Of a stretch of 64,000 nucleotides of DNA, positions 5,656 to 63,257 are shown in pieces (position 1 is the first letter of the stretch; the number at the start of each line of letters is the position of its first letter). This DNA is from Octopus sinensis (Eukaryota). The translations under genes and the position numbers were made by a program. The stretch spans positions 186,001 to 250,000 of the forward strand of contig NW_021832602.1 in assembly GCF_006345805.1 (NCBI RefSeq). Direction: 5' to 3'. Under the pieces are notes generated by a model. That model did no database searches. It was given only the letters and a program-made list of their open reading frames with translations, and had not been told where the DNA came from.

Positions 5656-5719
5656 TAATAATTAAAATAAGACGTTTAGTCAAAAAGATTGATGCCAACA
5701 AAACCTCCTAAATTTGATA

Positions 5720-6180: not shown

Positions 6181-6269
6181 ATTACGAATTTAATAATTTT
6201 TAAATTTAACGAATCAATTAAAAACTGAATATCTTCAACTAATTTGAGAACAGCTTATCATTGGATTGA

Positions 6270-10950: not shown

Positions 10951-10954
10951 ACTA

Positions 10955-11850: not shown

Positions 11851-11854
11851 GGTC

Positions 11855-12190
11855 ACAAGTGTCGGAGCATGTCGCGTCCCAAATGAGGCATTTCCCATGG
11901 TCGAAGGGAAATGTTGTCATGCCATCTGGGACCTTTCCATCTCCGCGATCCAACCCGACTGGTTCTAACACATTAGGAAATCCCGCAGATTTCAGGGCAC
12001 GGCTTACCACATCATTAAGCCCAGAGTGGCAAGGGAAACGACCAGCGCTACGACGGAAAGATAGCGGGTGTAGTCTCAAGGTGTCAATCGTCTGACATTA
12101 CCGGCATTGATGCTCACGGCGGATGTTAAATCCATGACGCAGAGGCATGACGCCATTGCGATGGCTGTCAGTCAGGCTCCTGAATACTTT
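11855..12190 (-). mobile_element. CRE RLE-domain fragment fused directly to the RTE fragment
   Basis: [53 protein letters not shown]. Confidence 0.85.
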
Positions 12191-29874: not shown

Positions 29875-30740
29875 TTAATTAGCAGCAGAGGATAAGATGG
29901 AATGGGAATTCCCACGCAAGATGGATATTGATATGCGTTGGAAAATCCATGTCCGTTCCCGATGATCATTTCTCTTTCTGCTTGCCAGGTCTCCCAGTTT
30001 AATAAGGAATTTTTTAGTTCTGGGACCGAGGACTCCCGATGTCTCCACTGCGATCGGGGCAAAGATATGGCGGTGAGATAATGCACTGTATTTCTTGATT
30101 TTTAGCGTTTCGGCCAGGTTAGCTGCGGAGCCCGGCTCTGCGGCTGACGTAAAGATGTTTCCGGCAGAGAAGGTGTCCGTGAAAGTTGCGTCCCAGATGA
30201 GCGACTTGCCATTTTCGAAGGGGAAAGTCGTTAGGCCGTCAGGACGTTTACCATCCTCCCAAACCAGACCGACCGGTTTCAACTGTGATGGGAATCCGGC
30301 AGTTTCGAGGGTCCGCTTGACTATGTTGTTCAGGGCAGTATGTCGGGGAAAGCGTCCGGAGCTTTTCTGGTACGATAATGGGTGCAATCCAAAGGTGTCA
30401 ACAGTCGATCCACAGCGGCATCAGTGTTCTTGGCATACGTTTAGTTCCAGGCGCAATGAGACGCCGATCCTCAGGCAATCGTCATTCAATAAGGTTCCAA
30501 TAGATCCCATAGAGATAGCGTTCAACCAAGCCCACCCAAGCGATGTTGGTTAAGCTTAGGCTTGAGGTTGTTCGACTTCTGATCACAGAGAATCCTGTCC
30601 CATTCGTCTTGTCCGTGTGTATTCTTCGGAAGCTCAAGAGACATCCCAAACCAGCGACTTTCTGCGGCGACTGATTCTGAGTCCATAGGAGAATCGGTAA
30701 CGGGTTGGAGAATTTAAACATATTGTCTGTGATCACCTTT
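29875..30740 (-). mobile_element. CRE retrotransposon 3' part with its natural C-terminus
   Basis: SGRFPRHTALN..DGKRPDGLT..WDATFTDT..AVETSGV..FQRISISILRGNSHSIL. Confidence 0.9.
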
Positions 30741-34049: not shown

Positions 34050-37000
34050 TTAAAACTTAGATCTATGCTTTTTGGTTTTTAATTTAGTATTCAATGTTCT
34101 GATACAGAACTTTAAATCCAAAGTTACTCGGTTAGATTTCTTGAGATAATTTTTTTCTTTGACCAAGGCAGATCTCCTTTGATCACTAATTCTTTGACCA
34201 GCTACTTTAGAATTATTCTCGTAAAGTAGCTCATGGTCTTGTCCAAAGACCTGAAGCTATCCAGACAACAATTTTTTAGTTTAGATTTCTTGGAACAATG
34301 GCCAGTTTGCAGAATTTAATTTTATCCAGCAAGAACTCTCTTGGTGTTGATTTCCCTTTTGATCCCCACAACGATCGGATTGTGGTAGCTTCTTGTTTTG
34401 TAAAGGACTGACCAATCAGTAATAGATGAAAGAAATTAAGAGCAAAATGTTACATCGGTGACGTAAGCAAATTAGTCACGCTGATGAGAGTCCTTGAGTT
34501 TCTCGATGAATTATTCATTATTGGTAAAGAGTCCATTTGAGATAGTAAAAGATTCTTTCTTGTATCTGTTGACTGAGTTTACAGCCATAAGGGTGCTTTG
34601 CATTCAAGTCCCCGCATATGATGACTTCTATTTAAAGAAATTTGGCAACCTATCGCTCCTCTGACAGGAGCCGGAGGGTGAAATGTTGATTGTAGGAAAG
34701 AAAGTCAAGCGGAAAAAACGTCAAGTGGAAAAAAAGTCAAGTCCGTAAGCGGAAAAAAAGTCAAGTGGAAAAAAAGTCAAGTCGTCTTTGTTTACTTTAT
34801 ATTGTATCTTTTTCGCAATAATAGCAACTTTTAATTTTTAACAATTTTTTTCAATACTTGACTTTTTTTCCGCTTTACTTTTTTTCCATTTTTGAAATTT
34901 TCCCTTATAAATTTTCGAAATTTAGCGCAAAACGGAAAAAAAGTCAAGTCCGTAATTTCGTTAACGAACTTGACTTATTTTCCGTCTTAAAATAATCGCT
35001 TTTCCTAAATCAATTTAAGAACTTCAAAGTAATAATAAAAGTGGCCTGACTTATTTGCTTAATCTTACGCCTTGATCTTAAATATTATGCATATTGTATC
35101 TTAAATATATGGATGCCGCAAAAATAAGTGACAAAATGGAGATAATATCATCTAACAAAGGAGGAAAAAAAAATTGTTTCAAAGGTTATATGTATACAAG
35201 GCACTCGACAACAAAAAATTATATAATTTTAATTGTGTTAAAAAGTCTTCGCAAGGATGCAGAGGAAGCTTAAGAACAGATCATAACTTTGAGTTTCCTA
35301 AAGAAGGAACCTCTCACAATCACGAATTAGACGAAACTCAAATAAAACTGACGAAGTTGTGCAACAAGGCAAAACTTCTTGCAAAAAAGAGCCAAGAGAA
35401 TCCCTTACAAATCTATTCAAATGTTGTTTCTCAATGTGATACATCATCCAGATTATTCTCCCTTCTGCAGATTCTTTCAAGCGAACAATAAGAAATCAAC
35501 GCTTGTCTCTACATATTCCAAAAAATATTCTAGATCTAGAAGATATTCCATCATTTTTAACTTCAACTCTTGGTCCGGATTCAGAAAACTTTTTAATTTA
35601 TGATAATCAAAGAAGAAACGATAGACTTTTAATATTCAGCACCAATACTAATTTAACGTTATTGGCAAATTCCAAAGTATGGTATATGGATGGAAATTTC
35701 TCTATGGCACCATGCATATTCAAGCAAATATATTTTATCAGAATTGAGTTCAATTCCAGTCCAATTACAGTTATTTATGGAATATTACCTTCTAAATCAA
35801 GAAAGATTTACGAAGAATTTTTTGAGACTATTCAAAATGCAATTCATAATTTGAATTTGGAATTTTGTCTTGAAACTATTATGGCAGACTTTGAAGATTC
35901 GGTATTTCGAGCTGTCCTTGCAGTATTTGGGAGACGAATACATATTAGAGGATGTTATTATCATCTAAGGCAGTCAACCTGGAGAAAAATTCAAGAATTG
36001 CATTTAGTAAAAGAATATAAAGAAAATATTAACTTCAACATTTTTTGCGCTATGATAGACGCTCTTGCGTTTTTGCCCATTCAAGATCTGGAAGAAGGAA
36101 TAGAATTCCTAATAGATAATATACCAAAAGATGTTCCAGATTCAAAATATATAGTAGATTATTTTGATCGAACATATGTTCGTGGTTATTATCGTTGCTT
36201 AAATAAACAAGAAAACCCTTTATCTGTTAGAATACAGCACATTTCTCCATTGTTCCCTCCAATTTTATGGAATGTGTATGAAGCCATTGTGAAGGATGGA
36301 ACAATAAATTATACAATTTGACGGGATATCGTCATCCATCGATATGGAATATTATATCTTCTTTTCAAAAAGAAGAAAATGACGAAAACAATTATTGACC
36401 AGGATTCCATCGGAAGAAAAATTACGACAAGAAAAAACAAGAGTACACTCGATCGACAACAAAGGCTGCTAAATATATGTCTGGATCGCCAAAACAGAAA
36501 AAAGACAATAGGAGAAACCCTACAAGCAATTGCATGGAATATTAAATATTCTTTTGATTCGAATTAAATAATCCTTTCATCACGTTTAATAAAATCTTTT
36601 TTAAATATTTAAAAATTTTTAAAAATAAAGAAAATCTGGACTACTCTAAGAATTTTTGTAAAATTTATGTGATTTATTTTCCGGAAGAAATGAAACAGAA
36701 TAGATAAAACAAAGGAAGCGAACTATTTCGGCAGGCGAGAAGCTAACGCGAACGAAAAAAAGTTTGCGCATACAATTGCAAGTGATATCAGTTTTAAAAA
36801 ACCGATATTCTGAACCAAGCTTTTAAAATTTATTTTCACAACGTGTTGCTTAGCTGTGGCAGAACATTTAAATGAAATTACAGTCCGTAATTTCGTTAAC
36901 GAACTTGACTTTTTTTCCGTTTTGCGCTAAATTTCGAAAATTATAAGGGAATAAATTTCAAAAATGGAAAAAAAGTAAAGCGGAAAAAAAGTCAAGTATT

Positions 37001-38203: not shown

Positions 38204-39166
38204 TTATTGACTAAGAAAGAGTCGTTTCTTGGCAGTGTTCATATACGGTCTGAGTACCCACTCGACCTGAGAAGACTGGGTGGTCTCCAATGTACCCAAT
38301 ATCAGTTTATACACTACTAATCAAGCCAAAAACAACTCACATTTCATTTCAAACCTCGGACCAATTTCAGTCAAATCAATGGACTTGGTTTCACGATTCT
38401 TTTTGAATAAATGATGTCTACAAAAAAATATCAAACCTACCGGAAAGACAGGACATCACCAGTGTTAGAAAAAGTCACCAGTCGCTTGGAACTGTCTTTT
38501 GGGACGGGAAACAAATATTTGAGGATGGACATAACTCGTCTGCCAAGAGCGCTTGTCATGTTGTGGAATATCAAATGAGGAAATGCTTGACTCATCGGGG
38601 CAAGTGGAGACTCCTTCGAAATGTCGTGACGGAGAACGGCGTGGGAGAGAGTGAAATAAGCAGTCGGGCCAAACGGGAGGTGACAGACGACCAATCCATC
38701 AGGGTTCCCACGTGTTTCATTAAGGACTATCACATCCGTTATATCATTGGCACGTGCGGCGTTCATCAGTTCGGTCTCTTGGCAATTTCCGCGATTAATT
38801 CGCTGAGAATTGGGGATCAGCAAGTGCATTTCCTGAGCAAACTGACGTAGACGAGAACTTGGATCACGCGATGTCGTTATTATTATCTTTGGGTCATTTA
38901 CCCCTGCCCAACGATACTCATCGTCGCAGTGATTCACGACACCGTCTGCCCCCTTGTCGTCCCAACCCAATTTCTTGTGGATGTTTAATGCTTCTTGGCG
39001 GAGTTCGGGTGGCACAAAATCTCCTGTTTCCAGTACATTTCGAATCTTTCTTTTCTTTTCCTCGATTTGTTGATCTCGTTGTTCAATGGATTTTCTATAT
39101 ATATACTCGCGTCGTAATCGTGCTTGTCTTCTCAGCTAACAATAGATTATTAGTACAACACACCAT
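38204..39166 (-). CDS. IMP4: U3 snoRNP protein IMP4 (about 294 aa, 3 introns)
   Basis: M|LRRQARLRREYIYRKS; DDEYRWAG..DPKIIITTSRDPSSRL; EIGPRFEMK; PYMNTAKKR. Confidence 0.96.
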
Positions 39167-39429: not shown

Positions 39430-41715
39430 ATTATTATTCAACCAAGACCACCATCTAAAAACCCAAAATCCAGGCGCGGTTAAAAGTGGCAACATTTAGT
39501 TGTTCGTTTGGTTCTTCTAAGGTTTTGCAGATTCTTGATTTAATTTTTGAAATTTTTTCCCGATTGGCGTAGCTGATCCTATTTCCTCACGCTTTGCAAG
39601 CGTAGCTAATTGTATGTTTCATGTACTCCTATAGGCGGTTTGGCAAAAGGAAAAACTCTGAGTATGTAGAGTTCCTTCATAAATCTCGTGATCACATCAT
39701 TCACATGCTGCAAGAAAAACATATGAGTGTCGTATGTTACTTCCAAAATATTTTTTCAATTTTTGGAATGGTGTCTCCACATCGTTTAAACACAGCTTTA
39801 CTTGCGCTTTCCCGAATCTCTTTGCTGAGGTAAGGAGGGTCTCTTTGCTAGATTTGTTGGTAGTCGTTTATACTAGTAACCACGCTTCAAGACCGTAGAA
39901 ATAGTTTTGCAGTCATTGCGATTTCTCAGTCGCGAGATGCAACCACAATATCATCCGCATATGATAGAACAATTACATCTTTAGCTTTTGGCATCGGGAG
40001 ATCCGATAAGTATAATTTGAAATAGGCTGATGATAAAGGCAAACCTTTAGGTACTCCATATGGAAAAATACTTCAAGCTTGAATTTGTACTTTCCGTATA
40101 AATTTATTCCCTTTGCCCAGTAAGGAAGCAACCTATCCACTTTTTTAGGAATGAGGAGATATTGCAGAGAAATATTTTCCTAGTCAGTATTTTCCTAGAC
40201 ACGAAGTCAAAAACCTTGTGAATATCCACCGAGCACATAATCATCTTGTCGCTGTAGGGTTTAATTGTTAGTCCTTTCGAGATAAAGTTAGTCAGCGTGG
40301 CAAGATGCAAGGCCGTCGACTTCCCACTTTTAAATCCATGTTGAAAATTTAGGTCAGGAAGGAAATGTTTGATTCGGTTAAGTACATGCTTTTCCAGAGC
40401 TTTAGATAACACGCAGAGGAGGGAGATTGATGTGTATGATGCTGGGTTGTATTTAGGCTTTCCCGGTTTCAGGATAGGGGAAATGTGGGCCATTTTGCAT
40501 ATGGTAGGTATTTAATTGTTAATCAAGAAGTTATAGATTTTAACCATGGCTGCTATTGCTAGTTACTCAAAGTTTTTTAACAGAATTGTAGAAATTCCGT
40601 CAGGTCCACAAGATCCCGTTTTTCTTAGATTTTTGATAGTCTGAAACACTTTTTCGTGATTAAAGATTATTATATCGCGAGTTTCCGAAGTTTAAGGGAC
40701 TTCAAAAATAGTCCATTGTATTTCCTGTGAGGAATATGACTGATTCCGGCATAAAATTTTATTAATTTGTTGGCAATCGAAATCTAGAAGGGAATTTTTC
40801 TAGAAGGGAATTCTAGAAGGGAATTTTCTTACGGTTTTTGACCCGATTTTCCTCTTTTTATGAACAGCTTTTAACCAATCAGGATTATCTAATTGAAGTG
40901 TTTAGCAGCATTATCAATTGAGTCGTAATCATGTACATCAAAAGTTATCAGTACTTTATCAATGTAGCGGGTAAAGTTAACCCAATCGGCATGGTTGTAA
41001 TCGTATTTAAAAATGGGAGGTGTTTTTCTGAAAAGGGATTTGACTTATATAACTATCGGGTTATGATCGCTCTGTAAGTCGTAGATTACGTTCAAATTAG
41101 TCAATGACACCAGGTTAGCGGAGCAAAGAGTCAGGTCGGGCGAAGTAAGTTTGTCCTTTCTGTTGTGTGGGGTTCTTGTGTTGAAAGAAGGATTGTTGAG
41201 AATGACTAGGTTGTCAAGTTGCTCAAGCAGCGACTTTCTACGCAAGTCAGCTTTTTTAGACTTAAGCCACTGTGTGTGCTTTGCGTTCAGGTCACCGCAA
41301 ACAAGAAAGTTTTAAAGTTTATCAACCAGGAGAAGATCTGGGGTAAAACTTTTCGGGCATAATCCCATTGGCGGAATGTACATATTGCAAATAAGTAAAT
41401 TTCCAACAGGAGTAGATATAGTAATTGCAGAAGCCTCCAAGCATCTATTTTGATTTAGTTTAGAGTTAATGAATGCGAAACTCTCCTGGTAGTAAATACC
41501 CTTTTTAATAAGTGTCATGAGACCGCCTCCGCGGACAAATTATCTGTGGGGACCTCGAGGACATGGTGAGTTTTTTTCAGGATTACACAAACATAAATTT
41601 CGTGTTTGGTCGAAAAGGAGTTTAATTCAGTTACCTTCCTGGTAATCCTATTAATGTTCAGTTGAATTAAAAAAAAACTTAATTGTGAGCAAAATAAAAA
41701 TAAATTAAACAAATC
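39430..41715 (-). mobile_element. Degenerate, internally deleted I/Jockey-group LINE (endonuclease plus RT) with (TAA)n tail
   Basis: IQLNIN, NMYIPP, CGDLNAKH, LQSDHNP, SISLLCVLSKALEK, QHGF, GVPKG and SYADD motifs. Tail TGAATAATAATAAT at about 39430. Confidence 0.88.
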
Positions 41716-41953: not shown

Positions 41954-42389
41954 TTAAACAAATCGGTGAGCAATAGACATAATTTTGGCATATTGGGGTC
42001 CCATTGAACGCAAGGCAGATGGAATTGGGACTGTAATTCTTGTGCCCAGAGGGTTTCCATTGGCATCAACCAACACAACGTTATTCGAGTCAAATCGGGG
42101 AATGAAAGATTTTTGGGACTTTCTCATCCCAACTACGTACGCATGTCTAACCAATCCGGCTACTGCCACAGTTATTCGGTCACCAATGTCAGCCTGGGGC
42201 TTTCTCCCGCGGTTTCCTATCATCCGTGGGTGTCTGTTCTTCACTTTGGCCTGCTTTCCAAGGTCACTGTTGTCCACCACTCGTACTTTGGTCATATTTC
42301 GGAATAGCACAGGCAGAGAGGTTCTATTTTGATTAGTCACTGAATATTAACCCTAGAAATCTTCGAGGTTGTACAAAATGACCCCACAT
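41954..42389 (-). CDS. MRPL14: Mitochondrial ribosomal protein L14 (about 135 aa, one 28-nt intron)
   Basis: VRVVDNS; PRFDSNNVVLVDANGNPLGTRITVPIP (animal mito-L14 type); short putative presequence MWGHFVQPRRFLG. Confidence 0.92.
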
Positions 42390-46210: not shown

Positions 46211-46969
46211 CTGGTAACCACAAAATACTTTTTTTTATTTATTTTTAATTAATTTAAATTAAGTTTTAATCAGTATTAAGTTAAAATTTTTTTCAATTAT
46301 AATTTATATAAATTATAATCACTTTTCCTCATTTTCCACAGCGCTTAACCGAGGAAAATGGAGGAGACTCGTTACTAACATTGTTTTGGGTGTTGCACAG
46401 GTGAGACTATTTCGGAAGAATTAGAAACGACCCCTGTGAGCTCAATCGGCTCTTTGAACTTGTCTCAATAGCCGTTCTTAAACGAATAACCAAAAAGTCC
46501 GCCCTCTTCTTTATATCAATCAATAATGCCACGTTTGGGTGCATTTAACCTTGTTTGACTGTTTGCTTAAAAATATAAACTGTTTATTGGTCAGGTCGGT
46601 CATGAACAGTGGAACTGACTTGATCGACTCAGTTTTTACATTTATCTTGAACAGTTGGAAAAGATAATTTTCACGTATCTCTAGAATCGCTAAATAAATT
46701 TTATTTAATTTTCGACTTAATTTTATAAAAAATGTAAGAAGTAAAAGAAAACCGGCGAGAAAATATCCAATTATTGTTTTTAATTACACTCTGGTGTTTA
46801 AAAATAATACTGAAATCATAATCACTAAAATCGTGAAATATGTGTCAGCAACATATATTTCAAAAAAAACAAACTATTGATAACTACGCTTTGAAAAAAG
46901 ATAAATAAAATCAAAAATGCCAAAAAATAAATGTTAAACTAATTTTAAAGAGTCCCGGATAGTGAACGT

Positions 46970-48242
46970 TTACTCCCGTGTGGTTGTTGTATTCCCGGAA
47001 TCATTAAGATGGTTTTTGTACGGATAGCTTTTATGTCCATCATCTATAATGAAACTTGTCCTGGCTAATGTGGGTACCTTAAAAAAGGGATGGATAATGA
47101 TGTCACCGATTCCGTTTTGCGAACTACCAAGACGCTTTTTCGGATTTTTGACAAACAACTAGAATATAAAATTGACATCACTTTTTTCAGAATATCTATT
47201 GTTTCACAATTCATTATTTCGGAAAAGTGAAGTTCGAGTAAAAAATAATCAGGTTCTTTATTAAGTATTGCTTTTATAACAGCATTGTAGTTTTGACCAA
47301 AAAATGGAAACTACAAAATAAAAGGTAAAATTAAAAACTCTTTTAAATAACATTCGGAACAGACAGACCCCAAACATCCAATGATCAATTGTTCTGGTAT
47401 ATTCTTCTTGTCTAGCAACTTCTGGAGCGAAATAGTCCACAATTCCCACAATTTCTTTAATTTTTGAATTCATTTTCATGTTTGTTTTGACATTTTCAAA
47501 GTTAGCAATTTTAGCGTACCCGTCTGATCCCACAGAAATGTTTTCCAGTGTTAAGTCTCTGCTAAATTATAAAAACTGACATGCCTGTGCATAATATTAT
47601 GCTCGTGGAGAAACTCGAGACCCAGCAAAATACAAACAGCGTAGAATTTTGACAATTGGAATGTCACTGTGGATATCATAGATTCTAAGTTTCCAAATTC
47701 AAGATATTCAACGATAATGACCGAAAAATTCTGAAGTTTTTTAATATATTGGAACCTTTGAGTAAAAATGTGAATGAAGATGGGACAAAAACTTGTTTTG
47801 TGACTTTTTTGCTAGAGAAAAAACATAAATTTCGTTTCTTCTAGCCTCATTCATTGTAATTTTGTGTTTTTCCCGCTCTTCTTCCTTGATGGCATATAAT
47901 TTCCCATCTTTTTTGTGTTTATGCAAAGATACCTAAATAAATTATTATTGTATGTATTTCATACATCTCCGAAGTTTCCCCGTTCCAGCAATCTGATGTA
48001 TTTAAAGTTATTAATATACATATTTCTAAAAGTAGTGAATATTTTATGCTATACTCTTTGAAATAATTTCTACTGATACTGAAATTCGTTTTTGACCAAC
48101 GTCTTTCAAAAAAAGTTGATTTTTTTCTGTTTAAGAATATAAAACTGTCTCCCGAATCATAAGATGAATTCAAACAATTATTTGAGCAATTTCCTTTCCC
48201 GCAAATGTTACCCTGTAATTATTAAAATAAGTTTTTAACCAT
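46970..48242 (-). CDS. PKN/AGC-like predicted pseudokinase, copy B
   Basis: Same exon-intron structure as copy A, open frame, same HRDLTLEN and NFE motifs, and roughly 15-20 amino-acid differences by my manual alignment. Confidence 0.88.
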
Positions 48243-48996
48243 TCGAATATTCCAATTATCTCGGATCGTCCTATTTATAACAAATCTTCAATGTTATCTG
48301 ACTAATTATTTTGACAAAAATTATTAATAAATATATTCTATTACAATCAGTACACAATTGCTCCTCTACCATTATGCTAGTAAATTAATTTTGAAAACAA
48401 TAAAATAAATTAAACTTAGAAAGTTAATATATTACAAAAAATGTGAAATTCGGGTTTCTCATGGCGTGATACACTCATTTACTCTTTTTAATCTTCACAA
48501 AATACTAGGCGTCCCAGCTTTGAGCAAAACGGCAAATAAAATACACGCAAACCTCTCTAATTTACCATTTCTATGATTTGCTCTCTCCCTTTTATCGAAA
48601 AAATGAAATTCTGTTTTTTTCTTATGTTTTTCTATTTTTAACATTTTTCTATTTCTTACTACTTTTTTTCAGGCTTATTTTAATTTTTTATTAATGTTTA
48701 TTAATTAATTTAATTAATTGCTTAATTAATTTATTAAAAATTGGACGCAGGTATAATCAAGTGCTTCAAATAGTATTTAAATACATTTTTTGTTATAATC
48801 GAACTTTTTTCAAATGATTGCTTAGTTATTTTTTTAATAAGATTTTCTTTAGAAAAATCAAACACTGGGATTTTTTCAGAATGTCTAAAACATATGACCG
48901 GTACTGTACTATCGAAAACATCAAACAAGGAATTGAGAAAAAAACATTATTAATTTATTTAACTGTCTTTCCTAAGAATGTTCTCAAATAAAACTT

Positions 48997-49640: not shown

Positions 49641-49959
49641 ACAGAGAATGGAATTCCACTCACTACGTTACTTTCTTTCTTTTCTTCTCTGGCTTTGTAG
49701 ACCTCCGAGAAGGTGCAGTCCACCGCCTTTCAAAACAATAACAGCAATGAAAAAATTTTTAATTTGTTTCCTGAACCTTTGAAAGATTATTATAATTTCA
49801 GAAAAATATTAGGAATGCAAAAGAAAAAATCCGAAACCGGAGGGAAATTAAGTGATTATTTTCGTATCCTTAAAAGAGTGATCATCCGGGTAGAAGATTC
49901 GTCAAGGAATTTTGTCCATCAATTTCTGACGATTGATCAAGTCAAAAGCTCTTGAAATA

Positions 49960-50500
49960 TCGATTTCAAGAATGTTTGTCACATTTTTGAACCTTTGAAT
50001 AGTGGAACATCACCATCTATAGCTTCAAACAATATCAGAAGTCCATTTTCATGCACGAAAACCGCTATGGAAAGCAGATATAAATTGTTCCATACAATGA
50101 TTTATTCTTTGTAGAGTAATACAATTGCCAGCACTTTCCGTATGCTATTTATAAGAATTACTGGCCTGAGTTTCTCTAATTTTCCTTTAGCTTTTTTCGG
50201 TTTTTAGACAGTGACCAGTATTTTTTGTCTCAGAGACAAATGGTCGTTTTTTTAAACATTCCATTGAAGAGGTCGGCAATGAGTACATGTAGATTTTCAT
50301 AATTAATAGTTCTGGTCCTAACCTATCTGACACTAGACTATTATTGTTTGTGAGCTTAGTGAATGATATTTAAACTTATTTAGGAGTTATTTCCAACTCC
50401 GATTTTCTGGGATAGCCAATAAATGCTGCAATTACGTTGATCTTTAATTTAAACAATTTCTTAGTTTCTTTAATGAATTAAAATAAAGTATCCAACTACT
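49960..50500 (-). mobile_element. Degenerate RTE RT fragment
   Basis: KLRPVILINSIRKVLA..SGFR resembles 57000-57250. Confidence 0.65.
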
Positions 50501-54370: not shown

Positions 54371-54479
54371 GTTATGAGCCATACTTCGAAGATGTTATGA
54401 GCCACCTAAAAATTGCTAAAAACTAAATAGTTTTCAATATATTTGATTTATGCATTCTCCCCCCTCCCCCCAACTCGAG

Positions 54480-55560
54480 GTCGGTGTCCGAAATGGCTGC
54501 TCATTCGATTCGTTAATGAATGGAATCGTCCGAGGAGTTTATCATAATTAAACTCGACGTTTCGAACACAGCCGGAGTGCTGTCGCGAACTGGTTTCCTT
54601 CCTACATCTTTTCGTGGATCTCTCATATGCTTCCCAAGCATCCTTATGTTCAACGATTTTCCTATCTCTTCGTCCATCTGGGTCCACCAGGGTGATCCCC
54701 TGAGCCCCCTACTTTTTGCTTTGGGCGTTAATCGTATCGCCCACTCTGTCGGATCCCCTATTAACATTTGGTACCCGGATGTCGCAACCATTTGTGGTTC
54801 TCCCAATGTTGTTTTCACGACCTCCGCTCTATTTTCCCTTCCCTCTCGGACATCGGCCTATCTATAAATGCAGACAAATCCAAAATTGTGAACATTCATC
54901 CCAATCCAAGTATGTCATCGCCGCAATTTCCATATACCAATTGTTCTTTCAGACGTCCAAATTACATTGTCTGGAAAAATCTTAAACTTATCCAAAATGA
55001 TCGAGAAGCTTAGAGACATCGAACCCCATGTGGCTCTTTTTCTCTTTCGAAACCACTTTTCCGTTCCCAAGATCCTTTACACGTTAAGATGTGCACCATG
55101 TTTTCACAGAGATCACCTTCTTTCCTACTCTGACAATATCATCAGGCTCGGCACGCGCTCATTTTGAAATCTGGCCTTTTACGATCCCGGCTGGACTCAG
55201 GCATTTTTACCTGTGGGCTGGGGCGACCTTGGCATGAGATCCTATTCCTATCTGGCCCTTTCAGCGTTCCTATCCGTTCACCCTGCTTCTTGTTCTCTCT
55301 CAGACATCGTTCTCAGGAACCTTCCCGAACGGAAATTGTCTAAAGATTACTCGGCTGCTTGTGGTCGGTTGGAACCTTGGTTTGGTTCGAGGCTGCTCAA
55401 TTCTCCATTCATCCAACGGCAGTGGGACGAGATCGTTTGTCAGCCGACTTTCGAAGACCTGGCTTCTGTTTCTAATCAACACTGACTCGTTTGCTTCCAT
55501 GCAGGTTGCTGTCAAAGCAGCGGTATTTGGCTAAAGACTCTCCCTCTCCTCTCCATCGGA
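54480..55560 (+). mobile_element. Degenerate CRE RT region
   Basis: VHQGDPLSPLLFAL..NIWY..; PKILYTLRC; GWGDLGMRS; QRQWD. Confidence 0.85.
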
Positions 55561-55562: not shown

Positions 55563-55695
55563 AGTCCTTTCAACATTTCGTGTAGTAGTCATCGATTGAA
55601 TTCGAATGGGATTGTTTCTTACCGACTTTGACATTTTCAACTTTAACTGCTTGTTTTTTTATCGCTTTGTTTGATAAATAGCTTCCGCGCAATGC
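55563..55695 (-). pseudogene. ispG: Bacterial-type ispG (gcpE; HMBPP synthase) 5' remnant
   Basis: Across small indels it reads CAEAIYQTKR*KT..AVKVENVKVG..NPIRIQSMTTT.RNV. PI(R/V)(I/V)QSMTTT is the conserved IspG N-terminus (recalled motif, no search run). Confidence 0.7.
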
Positions 55696-55766
55696 AGGAC
55701 TGTCCCTTGAAATTTTCAATCAAAAATTTTACCAAACATTTTGATCCATCTAAAAGTTGGAAGTCA

Positions 55767-58700
55767 ATAGACATCATCATTCAAGCTTTAATCCCCTTTT
55801 TTTCTATTATCCTTCTCGGGTATTTGGCTGGCAGCTTCAAAATTTTGGCAATGGTCAAAGTGATTGTTTAACCTGCCATTGCTTTCCTTTTATTATTATT
55901 AGCACTGTCATAGGAACATAATGTAATTTAAACTAATTAAGTTCCCACATGTGCCACATATGAGACTATCTTTTCGGTCATAATTTTCCATGATGTGCGG
56001 TTGTATGCTATACTCCTGAGAGTATCTAGGTCGTCTCCATTTTTCAGTTGTCTTTTAACGCGTTGTAGTTCTTTTGAGATTACAATAGGTAATGTATTTC
56101 GTGGGCGTCCTCGGGACGCAGATCTTTCGTCCTTTGCGTAATATGATTCCATTGCCCAGTTAGCATAAACATCCTGGTCGAGTCTTAGAATGTGGCCCAA
56201 TAGGCGCCAACGTGCTTCGGTAATGTCCACACTGACGGGTCTGCTGTTGCAGATATTGTATAGGGTGGAGTTCTTGATTTTCTTTGGCCAGTTGATGCCA
56301 ATAAGAATTCTTAACTGTCTTCTATGGAATGCATCAAGAGATTTTGATTCAGACTCAGATATTCCCCATGTTCCTCCGTTGTACAAAAGTATGGGTTTAA
56401 TAAAAGCATTGTATAATTTGGCACGTAAGGCCGTTCCAACCTCGCGGTTTCGTAGCCAAGTGGTCCGCAGTTTGTTAAGTGCAACAGTCGATAGCATCTT
56501 TCTCCTCATAATGTCTTCACTATCTCCTAAAAGAGTTCCAACTTTTTTCGAGTTTCGCCATTTCGTCTGTTCTATTTGCCTCCCGGTTGATTGTTACATA
56601 TTCGGTTTTTTCTATGTTCACTTTTAAGAACCATTTTTCCAGTGCCTGAGGAGCAATGTTCAGCAGTTCTTCGAGAGTCGACTTATCATGAGACAAAAAG
56701 TCTACATCGTCGGCATATATCACTTCAGTTATTGAAGTAGACTTCACTAGTTTTCTCAGATCTCTTAGTGCCGCTTCAAGATAGACAATGAATAGTACAG
56801 GTGATATTGAATCACCTTGGGGCGTTCCAATGCTTGTTTTGAAAGATCTTGATTGTACGGGTCCGATCTTCACCGTTAACTCGGTGTCTATAAGTAGTGC
56901 TCGAACCATTCTGATCGAGTCATTGTCAAGATAGTTTTGAGGATCTCCATTAGCTTGTCTCTGCGGATTGTATCAAATGCCCTGCTCATATCAATGCCCA
57001 ATATTGTGGTCGCCATTTTAAATTTCTGAGATATGGCACAGATCCATCTATGTCCCCATACTACATCTGCAGTTGATCGCCCAGGCCTGAATCCACTTTG
57101 GCTAGCCGACAGATATTCATTAACAGGGTCCTTAATACGTTCCAGTGTTACGAGCGAGAAGATTTTCCTTATTGTGTTCAAGAGTATGATTGGGCGAATG
57201 TTGTTAAGAGGACCTTGCGGCTTGTTGGGTTTTTGGAGAGGAATTAGCGTTCCTTTCCCAATAGGCGGTATGGTATTTCCATGGAACATCTCGTTCAGGA
57301 GATTTGTGATTATAGTTGAGATCTCCATTGGGGAGTACTTTATCAATTCACCGTTGATGTTGTCTGGACCCGCCGCACGGTTGTTTTTTAATTTTTTATA
57401 GCCTTCAAAACTTCAAGGTGTGTTATTTTGTTGTTTAGATAACGTTCTTCACCCTCATCGAGAGCATCGGCCCTGCCATTGAATAGTATTTCGAAGTGGT
57501 CGGCGATTGTATTTACCATTTCGATTGGGTTTCCAATTGTTTTCCCATGTTCATCGTGCACAACCAGTTTTGTTTTCTGTTGTCGTCGGCGTAGTAGTCT
57601 GATGGCTGCGTACATTTGCGCACCATCCTTTAAGTCTTCAACTTCTGATATTCGAGAGTTTAATAAAGCTTTCACGTATTTAAGATTTTCCTTCTTGATT
57701 GTTCTCGATATTTTCCTACGTTCTCTTTTGAGTTTTTCCTTTGCCTCCTTGTCGTTGGTGTTTTCAATTTTCAGTTGGATGGCTTTTTGTTTTGTTGCCA
57801 TTTCGGCAACATTTGGATTCAATGGGTTTGAGTGGTTTCTGAATGCAGTCGTTCCAATGGTTTCCGTTGCAGCTTTGTGAATAAGTTTTTCTAATATATC
57901 CCAGCTTTTGTTTGGGTCTTTTACCGTTTCTGTTACTTTTAGGTTTTCGATGATTGCCTGGGAGTATTTTTCCTTGGTAACATCTGATGTAATCAGTTTT
58001 TCCACTGAGTATCTAATTCGGTTTGATTCATTTTCTTTTGAAAGAGGCGATCCAAAAATTCTTTTCAGTCTCAATCGTGCCACAATGACTTTGTGATCGC
58101 TCAGTGTAAGTGCCCCGCATATGACCTGGCATCCAGCAATCGATGTTTTTCTTCTTGTCTACAGATGATATAATCGATTTGATTATAGATGTTGACGTAC
58201 TCCCCATTTTTGTTTCTTCTAGTCCCGGTCCACGTGGTTTTATGACGTGCCGCATGAGGAAAGACCGTATTGCATAGCAGTAGCTTGAATATGCTGCAGA
58301 AGTTCACAAGCATTTCACCTGGTGCATTTCTTATCCCCCGTCCGTGTCTGCCCATGAACACTTCTTCACCACGGCCTTTGCCTGCCTTAGCATTCCAATC
58401 ACCGGCAATTAGTATAAGGAAGGATGTTTTTATACTCGTGTAGGTCTTTGATAGCATGTGATAGAAAGAGTCTAGTTCATCCACGTTCTTCTTCAGTCTT
58501 CCACTTTGTGGGGCGTAGACATTTATAATGCTGATTATTCGATCCGTGTTGGTCAAAGTTTTTTGTCTCAGTTGTAGTACACATATGCGGTCGTTCACAC
58601 GGTAGTATTTGTGAATTGAATTCCAAAAGGTCTTATGAATGCCAAACCCCTGCCCATAATGACGTGATTCTGATGGAAGGAGAATGATTCGATACTCGTT

Positions 58701-59107
58701 GTGTATCTCATCTAGCCCGCCTTTGACCTTCGTTTCTTGAAAGCATCCGATAGTTGCACCATATGCATTCAGATCCCGGCATAGGATTTTTCGCTTGGAT
58801 AGGTCAGATAGTCCTCTGACATTGAATGATAGCAAAGTAAAATCTCTTTGTAGCCTCATATGTGATTAAGACTTTGTGCAATAGAGTTGCGTCACTAACT
58901 CAACCAGAGTGCTTTCCTTTTCTTATGTAATTTCAATGTTGACCAAACATGTGAATCGGAGAATTTTTGCTGAGTGCATTGCAAACGACTGTGATCTTGC
59001 TGTGCTTATTGACTACTACCAAACCTATTTGCAAAAAGCTTTTTTCAATTCTAATCATTACAGTTACAACATTGCTCATTGTAATTAAACTGGGTTTGAG
59101 GCTTTGA
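55767..59107 (+). pseudogene. AEC (auxin-efflux-carrier/PIN-like) family transporter remnant, internally deleted and split by the RTE (pieces 55767-55891 and 58910-59107)
   Basis: (I)DIIIQALIPFFSIILLGYLAG..; after removing the RTE and one TSD, PAIAFLFLCNFNVDQ; C-terminal LLSAL.TTV..YQTY.QKA..ILIITV. Confidence 0.6.
55892..58909 (-). mobile_element. Near full-length RTE-clade LINE (3018 bp) with a 12-bp TSD
   Basis: SFNVRGL, GDWNAK, NQIDYI, SDH endonuclease; RPIILL, GTPQGDSISP, YADD RT; (TAA)n tail; TSD TGCTTTCCTTTT at 55880-55891 and 58910-58921; four frameshifts and no internal in-frame stops in the reconstructed frame. Confidence 0.95.
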
Positions 59108-59139
59108 GGATCAATTCATTCTTGACAAGAAACATCAAT

Positions 59140-59462
59140 TCATTCTTCAATTTTTGCTGCTAAAATAAAATCGCTTTCACTCAGATCGTTAATTTTATAA
59201 TTCCAAACACGCAATTTGATCATTTCCCATGCTAAGAAAATATTCGGATGATGCTTTTCTTTTTTCCAACTTTTCTTATCACATTGATAAAAACTAACCC
59301 ATCCTTAAAGTTTTTAAACTTATACTATCTTTCCAAATAATGTTCTTCAATAATTTTCAATCCAGAGTCCAATTGCATATAAAGAGGTTTAAGTACCTCT
59401 GCCTGTAATGTTATATCCTCCGAAACACAGGGTACACATTTTTTCTCTGTTAAATTATTAAT
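59140..59462 (-). pseudogene. phhB: Bacterial-type pterin-4a-carbinolamine dehydratase remnant
   Basis: NLTEKKCVPC..ER*YKFKNF..HHPNIFLAW..WNYKINDLSESDFILAAKIE. The CxxC N-terminus and DF.LAAKI C-terminus are bacterial-type rather than animal PCBD. No ATG and one internal stop. Confidence 0.82.
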
Positions 59463-60005
59463 TGGACCGTTTGTGAAAAAACTTCTGTTTCGTCCCAAGG
59501 AAAAACGACAGGAAATCGCTTGATCAGCTTGAAACCTTCGCCTTTATCATATAAATTGAAGGATAACTGATACTTAAAATTATTATTTCAATTGGAAATG
59601 GTTTGTTTGAGTGACCTTAAAATCTCTTCATCTTCTAAAAAGGTTCCATAAATAAAAATAACTCTTGAATCTGGCCATTTAGTTTTGAAAATATCTGTGC
59701 ATTTAAAAGAAACGTTCTTGATATGATGCCCCTTAGCTACATGCTCTGGTAATTTTACAAACTGACAAATCCGTTTAATTCCAGTAAATGGCAGCTGAAA
59801 AAATGTCCTAAGATACTCCACGCCCTCTATCTAAACCCAGTTCAAGAGTTTTGATACTTGTCTCTATTGCCATCTCTTCAAAAGTCAAAAGAGGGGGTTT
59901 TCTATAGGTATACAGTTCTTGAGCTTTTTGTTGCCTTAAAAAAGTTTGCTGATCCGGTAAGGACTACGCATGATATATTTTTTAATAGGGAATAGTCAAT
60001 CCCAC
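59458..60005 (-). pseudogene. Bacterial class I SAM-dependent methyltransferase remnant (Chlamydiae-like by recalled motifs)
   Basis: SPYRISK..YTYRKPPL (YGETP-like)..ELGLDRGR (ELGxGRG)..NVSF..IFIYGT..ED..ISYP..FPW; frameshifts; its stop overlaps the start region of the dehydratase. Confidence 0.7.
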
Positions 60006-60270
60006 CGTATCCGTATCCCCAACAAAGTAAAGCCTCTTATTTTCACGTCTATATCACTTAAATTGACGACATAACCAGCCCAAAGCGTTTTATTCTTGTC
60101 AAAAAGACTTATTCCAGAAAAGTGTTGATTAGGATCAGCTGTCATCTCCAGAGTTAAAGAGGGCTCGTCTTCAACATCAAGAGAGACAATTTCCCACCAA
60201 GCAAGCTCGGAATAATCCAGAACAAGCTGTGAATAAGATTTTATAGAAACAAAGAATAAAGTTCGAAGAC
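60005..60270 (-). pseudogene. MBL-fold metallo-hydrolase (RomA/NAPE-PLD family, bacterial type) internal fragment
   Basis: ELAWWE..QHFSGISLFDKNKTLWAGYVV..LYFVGDT. Confidence 0.78.
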
Positions 60271-60284
60271 AATGTAATTAAAGT

Positions 60285-60345
60285 TGATTTAGGTGTTCAG
60301 TCAATCGATTTTGATACTTACTTTTCATTCGCGTGAGTTTGCCGA
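60285..60345 (-). mobile_element. Short hAT transposase C-terminal remnant
   Basis: AAGTATCAAAATCGATTGACTG on the minus strand resembles 62605-62645 (KYRNRLTD). Confidence 0.5.
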
Positions 60346-60549
60346 AAAAAGCTTTACATGCATAAGATAGTTAAAATATGTAAAAAAAATTTCACCATGA
60401 AAAGTTTACTGTACGAAACAAACAGAAAAAAAGTACAGAGGCTCTTAATTCTGTTATTTTTATTTATTTTTCAAAAGAAAATTTATTCGCCTTTCATAAA
60501 AACATGAAACCTTGAAAAAGAAAATTATTCAGTCAATTTAAAAGTGATA

Positions 60550-60811: not shown

Positions 60812-63257
60812 CAGCGGTTCTCAACCGCGGCCCGCCACAATTTTGGTGCAACCCGATTAAAATTATAAAAATATATTAAATATTTTGCACATTAATGTTT
60901 AAATAATATTGTTTGTGATGTCTGATAAACGTGTTAAACGAAGTAGAAAAATTATTCATGAAAATCGTGCATTTAACCCCGAATGAGAGGAAAAATTTTT
61001 TGTTTTTGAAGAAAATGGTAACGCACATTGCCTAATTTGTCATTCTGTCATACGATGTCTTAAGACATATAATGTCGAGAGACATTATTCGAAACATTCT
61101 TCTGAATATGATTCACTTCAAGGTGAATCAAGAAAAATAAAATTTCAAATCGCAAACTACAAACGAATTTGTTAAAACAGCCCCACTTATCAAGATCCGT
61201 AACATTAGCTTCATACAAAATAAGTATCTACTTGCAAAAAATATGAAGCCATATTCAGATGGAGAATTCATTAAGCAAGCTATTCATATATTTACAGAAG
61301 AATGTTGCTCTTCAGAAATTAAAAAAATTGGTCGAAACTTACAGCTTGGCAATGATACAGTTTCTCGGAGAATTGAGAGCATATCTGACGATCTTCATTA
61401 CCAGCTACTCACTTAATCCAAGTTTTTCGTACACTATTCTATTTCTCTTGACATCACTAAAGATATCAGTAATACAGAACAAATGGCCGTGTTTATTCGG
61501 GGTGTCATGCCTGACTTCAAAATTTACGAATAATTTCTCTCGTTACCTAGTTTTCATGGTTCTACTAAAGGAGTTTATATATTTCGCGAATTTCGCGATT
61601 GTCTTGAAATGGCACATTTGAATCCTTCAAAAATGTTTTCAATTGGTACAGATGGATGTCCTTATGGTTGAATGGAAAACTGGATTTCAAGGTCTCGTAG
61701 CTGGATGGCGAGTAGATGATGAGTTGAGTCCTGTGATTTGGCATCACTGCATCCTGCATCAAGAAAATTTAGCCGCGAAATCTATGAAAATGGACCATGT
61801 TACAAAAACGGTCATTTCGATCGTAAATTTTATTCGATCCCGTGCTTTAAATCACCGGAATTTCAAGATATTTCTCGAGGATGTTGACGCCGAGTATGGA
61901 AATTTGCTTATGCATACAACTGTACGATGGTTGAGTCGGGCAGCATGTCTAAAAAGGTTATATAAATTTAAACTAAATCGCATTTAGATTTTATGACCTT
62001 CTCCCGGAGATTATGCATTTTATTGACAATAAGATATTTTATCCTCAGCTTACTGATAAGGAGTGGATTACAGATTTAGCATTTATGGTAGATATTTCTA
62101 CGCACCTTTCAATTTTGAATACTTCTCTGCAGGGTAGGGGCAAACTATGTCATGAATTGTACGGAATGGTTTCTTCATTTATCGAAAAACTACACACCTT
62201 TGGAATAACAAATTGAAAGTAGAGTTTTACCATTCATTTCCCAATACTTTCAAATCACAGGGAAGATGGATTCTATGAAAAATATATCTGCGTTATTAGT
62301 GACTTAATCGATGAATTCGAAACACGTTTTAATGATTTTAAAGAAGCTCTACCTATTATGAAAATATTTTCGTCACCTATGGAAACAGATGCTGCACCGC
62401 TCCATACATACACTGGAACTAATTGAAATGCAGGCAGATTTACAACTTACCGCGCATTTAAGTCAAGTGAACTATTGGATTTTTGGGGTCGAATTCCACA
62501 GTGGAAATATCCGAACTTGGTCGATATGCTCAAAAAAATGCATCAGTCTTCGGACCAACGTATACATGTGAAGCTCTTTTCAGCAAACTTACGCAAATAA
62601 AAACAAAGTATCGAAATCGATTGACTGATGGACACCTAATCAACTTTTACGCACATCGTGTTCGACGTTTATTCCCTGTTTCGACAAAATAATAGACGCC
62701 AAACAGAATCAAGTCTCTGCATTGATTTTTATTACTTAATAAAGCCTTCTTTTCATTAATAACATAAAATATTTTTTGTGCGGCCCGCAAAGATATTCTT
62801 AATTATCGATTTGGACCATGAGCTAAAAAGGTTGAGAACCCCTGGTGCAAATCGACGAGTGTAAATTTTTTCACAGAAAGTACCATCAAGGTCATTGGCG
62901 ATCAGGCCATTGGGTGGAATAGACAGGGAAACTAGAAAGTGCTTTTTTGAAGAAGTTGCTGGTTCTTTTTTCCATTTATCCTTTAGACAGAACAGCGGAA
63001 ACACTTAATGAAGTTATCGTTCGACGCGTACTTCCCGGCACCCATATCATTACTGATGGTTGGGCAGCCTATAGTGGGATTTTTACTCCCTGTTTCGACA
63101 AAATAATAGACGCCAAACAGAATCAAGTCTCGCATTGATTTTTATTACTTAATAAAGCCTTCTTTTCATTAATAACATAAAATATTTTTTGTGCGGCCCG
63201 CAAAGATATTCTTAATTATCGATTTGGCCCATGAGCTAAAAAGGTTGAGAACCCCTG
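60812..63257 (+). mobile_element. Buster/SPIN (GTF2IRD2-like) hAT element with a duplicated right end
   Basis: TIR CAGCGGTTCTCAACC / GGTTGAGAACCCCTG; TSD GTTTAGAA (60804-60811) / CTTTAGAA (63258-63265); CLIC BED finger, HCILHQE, VRWLSR, TYTCEALFS; many frameshifts. Confidence 0.92.
62845..63080 (+). mobile_element. Captured Merlin transposase fragment with a 25-nt intron
   Basis: VQIDECKF..GIDRETRKCFFEEVA|DRTAETL..GTHIITDGWAAY; GT-AG intron at 62962-62986. Confidence 0.8.

Follow-up and report, generated by a model that had tools for sequence, protein, structure and literature searches.

A 64-kb stretch of DNA (the window; positions 186001-250000 of contig VCDQ01012509.1, GCA_006345805.1, filed as 'Octopus sinensis') holds what is very probably a non-functional relic of lateral transfer: DNA from a chlamydia's chromosome in the germline nuclear genome of the animal to which the contig belongs. 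The window's placement on the contig comes from 100% identity between the two over the 23.9 kb compared. About 1.7 kb of bacterial (non-transposon) DNA survives, as pieces of five neighbouring genes, from a donor piece of at least 2.7 kb. The segment belongs to a known kind, the nuclear DNA relic passed from bacterium to animal; its donor and its host are unusual. Five kinds of observation carry this reading: homology; gene order; neutral decay; a target-site duplication made by a LINE; and the context of host genes.

The original prediction named remnants of ispG, an AEC transporter, a pterin-4a-carbinolamine dehydratase (PCD), a SAM-dependent methyltransferase and an MBL-fold hydrolase in about 1.7 kb of non-transposon DNA. 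That amount holds, and tblastn with chlamydial proteins recovers all five, strands and coordinates included (Table 1). The query proteins came from L001, one of two uncultured chlamydial metagenome contigs used throughout: ENA ERZ27256773 k141_2192059 (L001) and JGI 3300017991 Ga0180434_10000379 (L002).

Table 1. Remnants of the chlamydial segment, the element inside it, and its flanks (window coordinates)
Feature	Position	Strand	Remarks
Left flank, non-bacterial: 3' part of another LINE-like reverse-transcriptase element	54443..55560	+	read from ORFs
IspG (GcpE) remnant	55569..55697	-	codons 1 to ~45 of a 605-codon chlamydial-type gene; remainder absent
IspG tblastn match	55685..55563	-	L001 aa 5-47
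AEC-IspG divergent spacer, 69 bp, non-coding	55698..55766		62/69 positions identical to L002 11949-12017
AEC transporter N-terminal remnant	55767..55848	+	codons 1-27 (tblastn aa 1-29 at 55767..55853)
AEC remnant, codons ~231-246	55849..55896	+	last 17 bp (55880-55896, TGCTTTCCTTTTATTAT) are the left target-site duplication copy
Non-LTR retrotransposon (LINE), ~3.0 kb, inside AEC remnant	55897..58909	-	boundaries from L002 alignment
Right target-site duplication copy	58910-58926		TGCTTTCCTTTTCTTAT; begins AEC C-terminal remnant
AEC C-terminal remnant	58910..59107	+	codons ~241-316 (tblastn aa 242-315 at 58911..59119)
PCD remnant	59117..59462	-	tblastn aa 1-106 at 59462..59146
Class I SAM-dependent methyltransferase remnant	59459..60005	-	codons ~32-221 of 221 (tblastn aa 39-221 at 59986..59462)
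Deletion junction	60005..60010		408 bp of donor DNA (L002 9687-10094) absent
MBL-fold hydrolase remnant	60010..60229	-	codons 162-234 of 336 (tblastn aa 162-234 at 60229..60012)
Right flank, non-bacterial: fragment of hAT-like transposase type	60238..60364	-	inverted copy of 62561-62690

Window positions 55569-55896 and 58910-60229 match L001 and L002 at 85-88% DNA identity over ~1,640 aligned bases (blastn E-values 5e-89, 0.0 and 7e-74). A comparison of gene order with chlamydial genomes shows that both contigs carry exactly the window's five genes, on the same strands: MBL hydrolase; SAM methyltransferase; PCD, with a 4-bp overlap; the AEC gene, on the opposite strand; and IspG, across a divergent spacer of 69-70 bp. 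The bacterial spacing proposed for the window agrees in each respect. Starts of the divergent pair, put at about 70 bp apart, lie 69 bp apart; the convergent ends, put at about 30 bp, have stops 33 bp apart as now read (59107 and 59141); and the proposed overlap of stop and start, 4 bp in the donor type, joins the methyltransferase stop to the start of PCD (ATGA, L002 10663-10666). The predicted bacterial origin is thus supported by DNA identity, by gene order shared with a bacterial metagenome contig, and by genes without introns. The contigs and the window differ in condition. The genes of L001 and L002 are intact (MBL 336, methyltransferase 221, PCD 114, AEC 316 and IspG 605 codons) and under purifying selection, whereas all five in the window are broken and truncated.

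Homologues, tree and neighbourhood alike sustain the proposal of a Chlamydiae-like donor. A search with the L001 IspG gives, as its ten best named genome matches, chlamydial or unclassified metagenome-assembled genomes (MAGs), at 53-67% identity; Verrucomicrobiota come next at no more than 50%. The named homologues of the methyltransferase all come from chlamydiae (Simkaniaceae, Neptunochlamydia, Chlamydiia, Parachlamydiaceae), and in the methyltransferase tree the window fragment is sister to P0001, the intact methyltransferase of a chlamydial contig, with 98% bootstrap. The related chlamydial genomes L006 and L084-L088 retain a PFK-MBL-methyltransferase-PCD ... IspG neighbourhood. Because L006 and L084 keep most of this order and lack the AEC gene there, the five-gene order in its exact form is confined to the L001/L002 lineage. 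Judged from sequence, the donor is a close relative of the L001/L002 bacterium, near Simkaniaceae/Rhabdochlamydiaceae. The signal for family is split: IspG points to Rhabdochlamydiaceae-labelled and unclassified MAGs, the methyltransferase to Simkaniaceae-labelled MAGs. MAGs of these two families (e.g. OY970369.1, 'uncultured Chlamydiae bacterium MFD06092.bin.1.176', and Neptunochlamydia) share the methyltransferase family and a partly conserved neighbourhood. Their proteins are 44-67% identical to those of L001/L002 and 35-47% identical to the methyltransferase, PCD and MBL remnants. Low identity, and the lack of the AEC gene at that position, mark these MAGs as the donor's relatives rather than the donor itself.

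All five genes in the window are dead. Three have lost the start codon, and the segment carries in-frame stops, frameshifts, and large deletions of 609 and 408 bp. Small indels comprise 17 deletions and 3 insertions. Substitutions are spread evenly over the three codon positions (68:64:62; chi-square p = 0.87), with pN/pS ~0.74. As a control, two intact chlamydial genomes compared over the same codons gave 71:44:196 and a pN/pS of 0.19. Polarised with L006 as outgroup, 70 amino-acid changes lie almost all on the window branch (65), with 5 on the L002 branch. This distribution, together with the even spread over codon positions, indicates neutral decay after transfer. Neutral divergence is ~12%, nearly all of it on the animal branch, and changes from GC to AT exceed those from AT to GC (130 vs 46). 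The bacterial genes were never maintained in the animal genome; no selection for bacterial function acted after transfer. The original prediction of a fossil with long residence therefore gains codon-neutral substitutions, lost starts, stops, frameshifts and deletions in its favour, although such residence does not convert to years.

The lesions differ from gene to gene. The IspG remnant has lost its start codon (GTG to CTG), 1 bp at ~55655 and 6 bp at ~55585, has gained 1 bp at ~55620, and contains one in-frame stop. It scores below the curated Pfam threshold (GcpE PF04551, 23.5 bits vs a cut-off of 32; NCBIfam PRK00366, 31.3 bits) because only ~43 codons remain. The assignment follows instead from the DNA, which is 88% identical to the 5' end of a gene of 605 codons that has both PF04551 and PF26540. 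The piece is a remnant of the MEP-pathway family IspG/GcpE, and is not a functional member. The AEC N-terminal remnant has likewise lost its start (ATG to ATA), and at the junction 55848/55849 the 609 bp of donor gene (L002 11258-11866) are absent. Its C-terminal counterpart shows deletions of 9, 2, 1 and 1 bp as well as in-frame stops. Against Mem_trans PF03547 the N-terminal fragment reaches 12.3 bits, under the cut-off of 25.7, and a search of the C-terminal fragment with the same profile gave no hit; identity therefore rests on orthology, the intact L001 orthologue scoring 114.6 bits.

The PCD remnant is almost complete, with 106 of its 114 codons alignable at 75% amino-acid identity to L002, and passes the Pfam threshold (PF01329, 65.9 bits, cut-off 26). 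It has nevertheless lost its start (ATG to ATT) and one base at ~59267, and is interrupted by two in-frame stops; its 72.2 bits against NCBIfam NF002016 lie under the equivalog cut-off of 133, as expected of a decayed copy. The methyltransferase remnant, 62.6% identical to P0001 in amino acids, contains five 1-bp, two 4-bp and one 12-bp deletions. It scores 12.6 bits against PF13847, under the cut-off; intact P0001 is recorded with PF13847 and PF13649. The MBL remnant (~78% amino-acid and 88% nucleotide identity to L002) lacks one base at ~60063, is interrupted by one in-frame stop, and reaches 15.5 bits against PF12706, under the cut-off, where the intact L001 protein scores 131.6. The 408-bp deletion takes out the MBL C-terminus, a 6-bp spacer, and the methyltransferase N-terminus.

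The host, called 'this parasite' in the original prediction, can be specified further: although the contig was deposited as Octopus sinensis, its DNA most likely comes from a dicyemid mesozoan that lived in the kidney of the octopus being sequenced. We infer this because the GT-AG introns are 23-26 nt long and no cephalopod relative exceeds 64% identity. Five host introns, in the genes for IMP4 and V-ATPase subunit a, measure 23, 24, 24, 25 and 26 nt, all GT-AG. We know of no introns this short in cephalopods nor, to our knowledge, does any animal apart from dicyemids have them. The window has 36.8% GC and is LINE-rich. The published genome of Dicyema japonicum has 36.7% GC and 49% repeats. 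Its source animals were collected from the kidneys of O. sinensis, the filed source of the window contig (PMC6736024). Compared by published statistics, the D. japonicum and Dicyema sp. genomes share ultrashort introns, GC content and LINE-rich repeats with the window (PMC6736024, PMC6543705).

There is a small chance that the relic sits in some other small-intron eukaryote from the octopus sample. The case for a dicyemid is built from intron length, GC, repeats and the pairing of host and parasite, rather than from comparison with dicyemid sequence. That the host is an animal, however, is clear from the IMP4 exon, which shares 60-65% identity with those of many bilaterians. Among animals with shortened introns, the literature consulted treats two groups, and the intron lengths fit the dicyemid median of 27 bp rather than the orthonectid median of 57 bp (PMC6543705). 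Dicyemids were, moreover, taken from O. sinensis kidneys for the D. japonicum genome.

That the octopus itself received the DNA is distinctly unlikely. The deposition supports it, as does NCBI's annotation of a gene on the contig as an octopus gene. That gene model, however, is chimeric, joining MRPL14 to IMP4 with a cut at the first mini-intron. The best non-self match of the IMP4 exon is 64% (a nemertean); apart from its own gene model it has no relative above 64%, and its 90% cluster has a single member, although further octopus genomes have NCBI annotations. Introns of dicyemid length and at least seven host housekeeping genes within 64 kb also argue against an octopus.

Integration of the segment into the animal genome, as originally predicted, is supported by transposons within it and at both its ends and by intron-bearing animal genes on the contig. 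The LINE that splits the AEC remnant has a single endonuclease and reverse-transcriptase coding region, frameshifted into five ORFs (Pfam Exo_endo_phos and RVT_1), and lacks a poly(A) tail; its size and layout are like those of RTE elements. The 64-kb window holds no second DNA-level copy of this LINE; relatives at the protein level, 36-51% identical, are present. Flanking the LINE is a 17-bp target-site duplication of chlamydial sequence, so the bacterial DNA already lay in a chromosome by the time the LINE arrived, a point against both contamination and chimeric assembly. On the evidence of this one assembly, the segment is physically part of the host chromosome.

Both ends of the segment adjoin transposon fragments. 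On the left, a LINE-like element, in which a Pfam search found no hit, ends beside the IspG remnant. The fragment on the right is an inverted copy, 80% identical, of the stretch that encodes the C-terminus of a hAT-like transposase. Neither fragment has chlamydial sequence beyond it. Because these fragments now bound the segment, the original host-bacterium junctions and the full extent of the insertion are not preserved.

These abutting fragments also give some footing to the idea that the bacterial DNA arrived by an indirect route, carried by a mobile element or virus, and so records no chlamydial infection of the animal. This idea has little to recommend it: the fragments are of unrelated classes and do not form a single element with paired ends; 2.7 kb of contiguous donor gene order is kept, intergenic DNA included; and the window contains no second copy of the segment. 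An assembly artefact, in which reads of a living chlamydia were wrongly joined to animal DNA, is scarcely credible, even though the assembly holds DNA of more than one organism and a contig with dicyemid-type genes was filed as octopus: a living bacterium would have intact genes, whereas here starts are lost, there are stops and ~20 indels besides the two large deletions, substitutions are neutral with respect to codon position, an animal LINE has duplicated its chlamydial target, and more than 40 kb of the 294-kb contig separates the segment from each end.

The preferred reading, direct transfer from a chlamydia, suggests the following history. A chromosomal piece of at least 2.7 kb from a chlamydia, an obligate intracellular bacterium, would have entered the animal's germline nuclear genome, bringing the MBL hydrolase, methyltransferase, PCD and AEC genes and the start of IspG. 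Presumably, DNA from a lysed intracellular bacterium was joined into a break in a germline chromosome. Substitutions biased from GC to AT, lost starts, stops and mostly deletional indels then accumulated, along with the two large internal losses. The host LINE split the segment, and other transposon fragments came to bound it.

Past chlamydial infection of the host lineage is a reasonable inference from this relic, which points to a bacterial association of a dicyemid-type animal that is undescribed in the literature searched. No link between dicyemids and chlamydiae was found in that literature; the D. japonicum and Dicyema sp. genome papers report neither such a link nor bacterial insertions (PMC6736024, PMC6543705). 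More tentatively, dicyemids may carry, or until recently have carried, a Simkaniaceae-related endosymbiont in or beside the germline (axial cell, agametes), the present locus being one of several insertions, some possibly expressed. If so, dicyemids would add a chlamydial host lineage unrecorded in the literature searched, and the locus would offer a dated marker for associations among dicyemids, bacteria and cephalopods.

The nearest precedent comes from Wolbachia, whose insertion into the nuclear genomes of insects and filarial nematodes was reportedly described by Dunning Hotopp et al. in 2007. Wolbachia inserts are mostly non-functional, decay neutrally, are invaded by host transposons, and can hold several adjacent genes in bacterial order. 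The window segment differs in its donor, which is from the Chlamydiota rather than the Rickettsiales; in its host, most likely a dicyemid; in its small surviving size; and in having no living donor known in the host. In other respects the two are alike: pieces of an intracellular bacterium's chromosome in an animal germline, with gene order kept, neutral decay, and invasion by transposons.

The interval 55563-60270 consists of three parts: a minus-strand block of 3 kb, which is a LINE, and a short stretch on either side of it. Translated in all six frames, the two outer stretches yield the peptides named in the original prediction of five bacterial gene remnants. In profile searches the pterin-4a-carbinolamine dehydratase (PCD) remnant is clear (PF01329, 65.9 bits against a cut-off of 26; NF002016, 72.2 bits), IspG matches weakly (PF04551, 23.5 bits; PRK00366, 31.3 bits), and the AEC transporter, methyltransferase, and MBL hydrolase pieces score below threshold. 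Profile searches by themselves would therefore leave these last three unproven.

The stitched methyltransferase fragment, used as a protein query, retrieved a single protein, P0001, which is 60% identical across 98% of the query length. P0001 is encoded by two uncultured chlamydial metagenome contigs, L001 (ENA ERZ27256773 k141_2192059) and L002 (JGI 3300017991 Ga0180434_10000379), which are identical across 20.7 kb and carry the five genes intact. When all 22 L001 genes were compared with the window by tblastn, only these five gave matches; all five predicted remnants are present, in the order and relative orientation of L001. Also kept is the non-coding DNA that separates AEC from IspG (62 of 69 positions identical). 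The 69 bp of this spacer agree with the predicted divergent pair about 70 bp apart; the convergent ends, placed about 30 bp apart, have present-day stops separated by 33 bp (59107 and 59141); and the predicted overlapping stop and start is ATGA in the donor type. The donor sequence represented amounts to about 2.7 kb, of which about 1.7 kb is left after two internal deletions: 609 bp within AEC, and 408 bp comprising the MBL C-terminus and the methyltransferase N-terminus. Outside 55.5-55.95 kb and 58.85-60.3 kb, no more chlamydial DNA was found in the window by tblastn with the 22 L001 genes, by tblastx against five chlamydial loci, or by blastn and tblastx of both flanks against L002.

Features of the window and of the matching chlamydial contigs
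Feature	Window position	L002 position	Strand	Description
Gene 1 (L001/L002)			+	MBL hydrolase, 336 aa
Gene 2 (L001/L002)			+	methyltransferase, 221 aa
Gene 3 (L001/L002)			+	PCD, 114 aa; overlaps methyltransferase by 4 bp
Gene 4 (L001/L002)			-	AEC transporter, 316 aa; end overlaps PCD
Gene 5 (L001/L002)			+	IspG, 605 aa; 69-70 bp from AEC start
Aligned block	55569-55848	12152-11867		87.8% DNA identity
Aligned block	55849-55896	11257-11210		85.4% DNA identity
Aligned block	58910-60005	11226-10095		87.3% DNA identity
Aligned block	60010-60229	9686-9466		88.1% DNA identity
Inserted LINE	55897-58909		-	~3 kb; Exo_endo_phos endonuclease and RVT_1 reverse transcriptase across five ORFs
Relatives of inserted LINE	5756-5860, 11606-11913, 49914-50218			36-51% protein identity
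Left flank	54443 to ~55560			3' part of another LINE-like element, adjoining the segment
Right flank	60238-60364			inverted 80% copy of 62561-62690, C-terminal coding end of hAT-like transposase
hAT-like transposase region	61243-61987, 62561-62690			ORFs, then C-terminal end nearby; last ~130 bp copied beside segment
IMP4 large exon	38437-39015
IMP4 first intron	38420-38442			23 nt
MRPL14	42295-42146			adjacent to IMP4
P0002 gene-model region	38207-39135, 42146-42295
Inverted pair	31352-33285, 46894-48828			1.9-kb copies, 96.4% identical, either side of IMP4, MRPL14 and V-ATPase genes
Transposon-derived ORFs	1-2209, 5043-6724, 9142-12079, 29875-30553, 35503-36321, 40104-40493			by ORF reading only: endonuclease/RT LINE pieces, Helitron/Pif1-like helicase piece, MULE-like transposase, hAT-like pieces

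The donor, as predicted, was Chlamydiae-like. L001 IspG was scanned against bacterial genomes, one per species, and the best matches listed are chlamydial or unclassified metagenome-assembled genomes (MAGs) throughout: uncultured Chlamydiae MFD06092.bin.1.176 (67%), a Rhabdochlamydiaceae MAG (65%), and MAGs labelled Waddlia, Parachlamydiaceae, Chlamydiia, or Parachlamydiales (53-62%). Verrucomicrobiota and other phyla reach at most 50%. Intact P0001 retrieved 824 homologues, and all of those named by organism are chlamydial: Simkaniaceae (54-55%), Candidatus Neptunochlamydia (52%), Chlamydiia, Chlamydiota, and Parachlamydiaceae (44%). (That the decayed query found a single homologue thus reflects the limits of word-based search, not rarity.) The window methyltransferase remnant is nearest to P0001, at 62.6%, with the second-best match at 51%; in a neighbour-joining tree the two are sisters with 98% bootstrap, the window branch long and the P0001 branch short. 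Gene neighbourhood agrees. The related chlamydial locus L006 reads PFK-MBL-methyltransferase-PCD ... IspG, and loci L084-L088 have two hypothetical genes between PCD and IspG in the same arrangement. Neither has AEC at this position, so the exact five-gene order connects the segment with the L001/L002 lineage specifically. The evidence places the donor near Simkaniaceae/Rhabdochlamydiaceae, and no more precisely than that within Chlamydiota. Transfer in the opposite direction, from eukaryote to bacterium, was rejected: IspG is an enzyme of the MEP pathway, which is not known from animals, and chlamydiae conserve this gene neighbourhood.

The stops, frameshifts, and deletions of the original prediction are borne out in the alignment to L002. 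Six in-frame stops arose by substitution; small indels comprise 17 deletions and three insertions, beside the two large deletions; and start codons are lost in IspG (GTG to CTG), AEC (ATG to ATA), and PCD (ATG to ATT). Of the 605 codons of IspG, just 1 to about 45 survive, and of the 336 of MBL, just 162-234. None of the five genes is translatable, so no function is proposed. Substitutions between window and L002 fall on codon positions 1, 2, and 3 in the ratio 68:64:62 (chi-square p = 0.87), and pN/pS, crudely estimated, is 0.74; for the same codons in intact chlamydial genes, L001 versus L084, the control values are 71:44:196 and 0.19. With L006 as outgroup, 65 of the polarised amino-acid differences are assigned to the window lineage and five to that of L002. 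Together, polarised changes and codon-neutral substitutions indicate a donor whose proteins very closely resembled those of the L001/L002 organism, with almost the whole of the ~12% divergence accumulating free of selection, and so after transfer. The claim of long residence gains from this neutral divergence in a qualitative sense, not one convertible into years.

Changes from GC to AT number 130, and those from AT to GC 46; the segment is 34.3% GC, its L002 counterpart 39.5%, and the whole window 36.8%. Hypermutation of foreign DNA was considered for this excess and judged unnecessary: the segment (34% GC) is drifting toward the AT-rich composition of its host.

Integration into an animal genome, as originally claimed, draws its support from the LINE within the segment. 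Across this element the L002 alignment overlaps by 17 bp: L002 11210-11226 corresponds both to window 55880-55896, TGCTTTCCTTTTATTAT, and to 58910-58926, TGCTTTCCTTTTCTTAT. This repeat of chlamydial DNA is a target-site duplication, as produced by insertion of a non-LTR retrotransposon into chromosomal DNA. This implies that the chlamydial DNA lay in an animal chromosome before the LINE arrived, and the LINE itself has since been disrupted by frameshifts. Contamination and assembly chimera, which would place the bacterial DNA outside the animal genome, can in practice be dismissed, given the decay and the target-site duplication. The window holds no other copy of this LINE at the DNA level, and only distant relatives at the protein level. 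Both flanks are transposon-derived, and the inverted hAT-like copy on the right suggests two hAT-like elements or one rearranged. The original junctions and the original insert size are irrecoverable from the window. Nothing favours transport of the segment as transposon cargo.

Whose chromosome this was can be read from its neighbours. The only protein more than 64% identical to the IMP4 exon is P0002, annotated as U3 snoRNP protein IMP4-like from Octopus sinensis (100%), the sole member of its own 90% cluster. P0002 is encoded on VCDQ01012509.1 (294,242 bp) of assembly GCA_006345805.1; a 23.9-kb piece of this contig agrees with the window at 100% identity, which locates the window at 186001-250000. 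P0002 is a chimeric model, in which the first 50 residues of MRPL14 are joined to IMP4. The model ends where the first intron begins; IMP4 proteins of other animals resume alignment past a gap of about 20 nt, and the real IMP4 runs to about 38207. Five GT-AG introns can be read from the DNA: 23 and 24 nt in IMP4; 24, 25, and 26 nt in V-ATPase subunit a. The 64 kb hold at least seven housekeeping genes, recognised from ORFs (with a database search for IMP4 alone): ZIP transporter, choline-transporter-like, SRP54, IMP4, MRPL14, V-ATPase a, and GNL2. The chimeric model, the tiny introns, the dense housekeeping genes, and the isolated IMP4 argue against an octopus host, which the introns in particular contradict.

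Dicyemid introns have a median of 27 bp, two thirds being shorter than 30 bp, whereas the orthonectid median is 57 bp (PMC6543705). The genome of Dicyema japonicum, from animals taken from Octopus sinensis, has 36.7% GC (36.8% in the window) and 48.9% repeats, and is LINE-rich (PMC6736024). On introns, GC, repeats, and source animal, the most likely origin of the contig is a dicyemid whose DNA entered the octopus assembly; nothing favours another small-intron animal. Although filed as octopus, the whole window looks dicyemid, without cephalopod-like protein identity. The abundant transposon ORFs fit a small repeat-rich genome, and the inverted 1.9-kb pair is probably one fairly young transposon present twice. 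No RNA genes turned up in Rfam and tRNA scans of the full 64 kb, so none can help to identify host or donor. Exact-sequence look-up of the ORF guessed to be MRPL14, and of a 77-aa methyltransferase pseudo-ORF, returned no record, and so no independent assembly with the relic by this route.

The favoured reading is that DNA of an intracellular chlamydia was captured into a germline chromosome, accidentally and without adaptive value, and then decayed neutrally amid transposon traffic. Wolbachia inserts in animal genomes show the same pattern: capture, then neutral decay and transposon invasion. To our knowledge, bacterial DNA transfers into animal germlines involve almost only Wolbachia and a few other symbionts of arthropods and nematodes. 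The literature searched contained no paper linking dicyemids with chlamydiae, and none on bacterial DNA in dicyemid genomes. The type of event is known; within the literature searched, the chlamydial donor phylum and the dicyemid host group are both new.

Dicyemids are among the simplest animals, with about 30 cells, and the relic is physical evidence of past chlamydial access to the germline of such an animal. Such access indicates a symbiosis or infection not known to have been looked for, a matter relevant to lateral transfer, chlamydial host range, and dicyemid biology. The near match to one uncultured environmental chlamydia provides a candidate donor lineage for which cephalopod kidneys and dicyemids can be screened. 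There is also a practical warning: a 294-kb contig and at least one octopus-annotated gene model in the public Octopus sinensis assembly appear parasite-derived.

A second uncultured chlamydia, that of L084-L088, has a methyltransferase 76% identical to P0001 and the two hypothetical genes in place of the L001/L002 AEC transporter. It turns up in five or more independent sequencing runs (Logan SRR6403396, SRR5918683, and SRR8815366; ENA ERZ27294992 and ERZ27295396).
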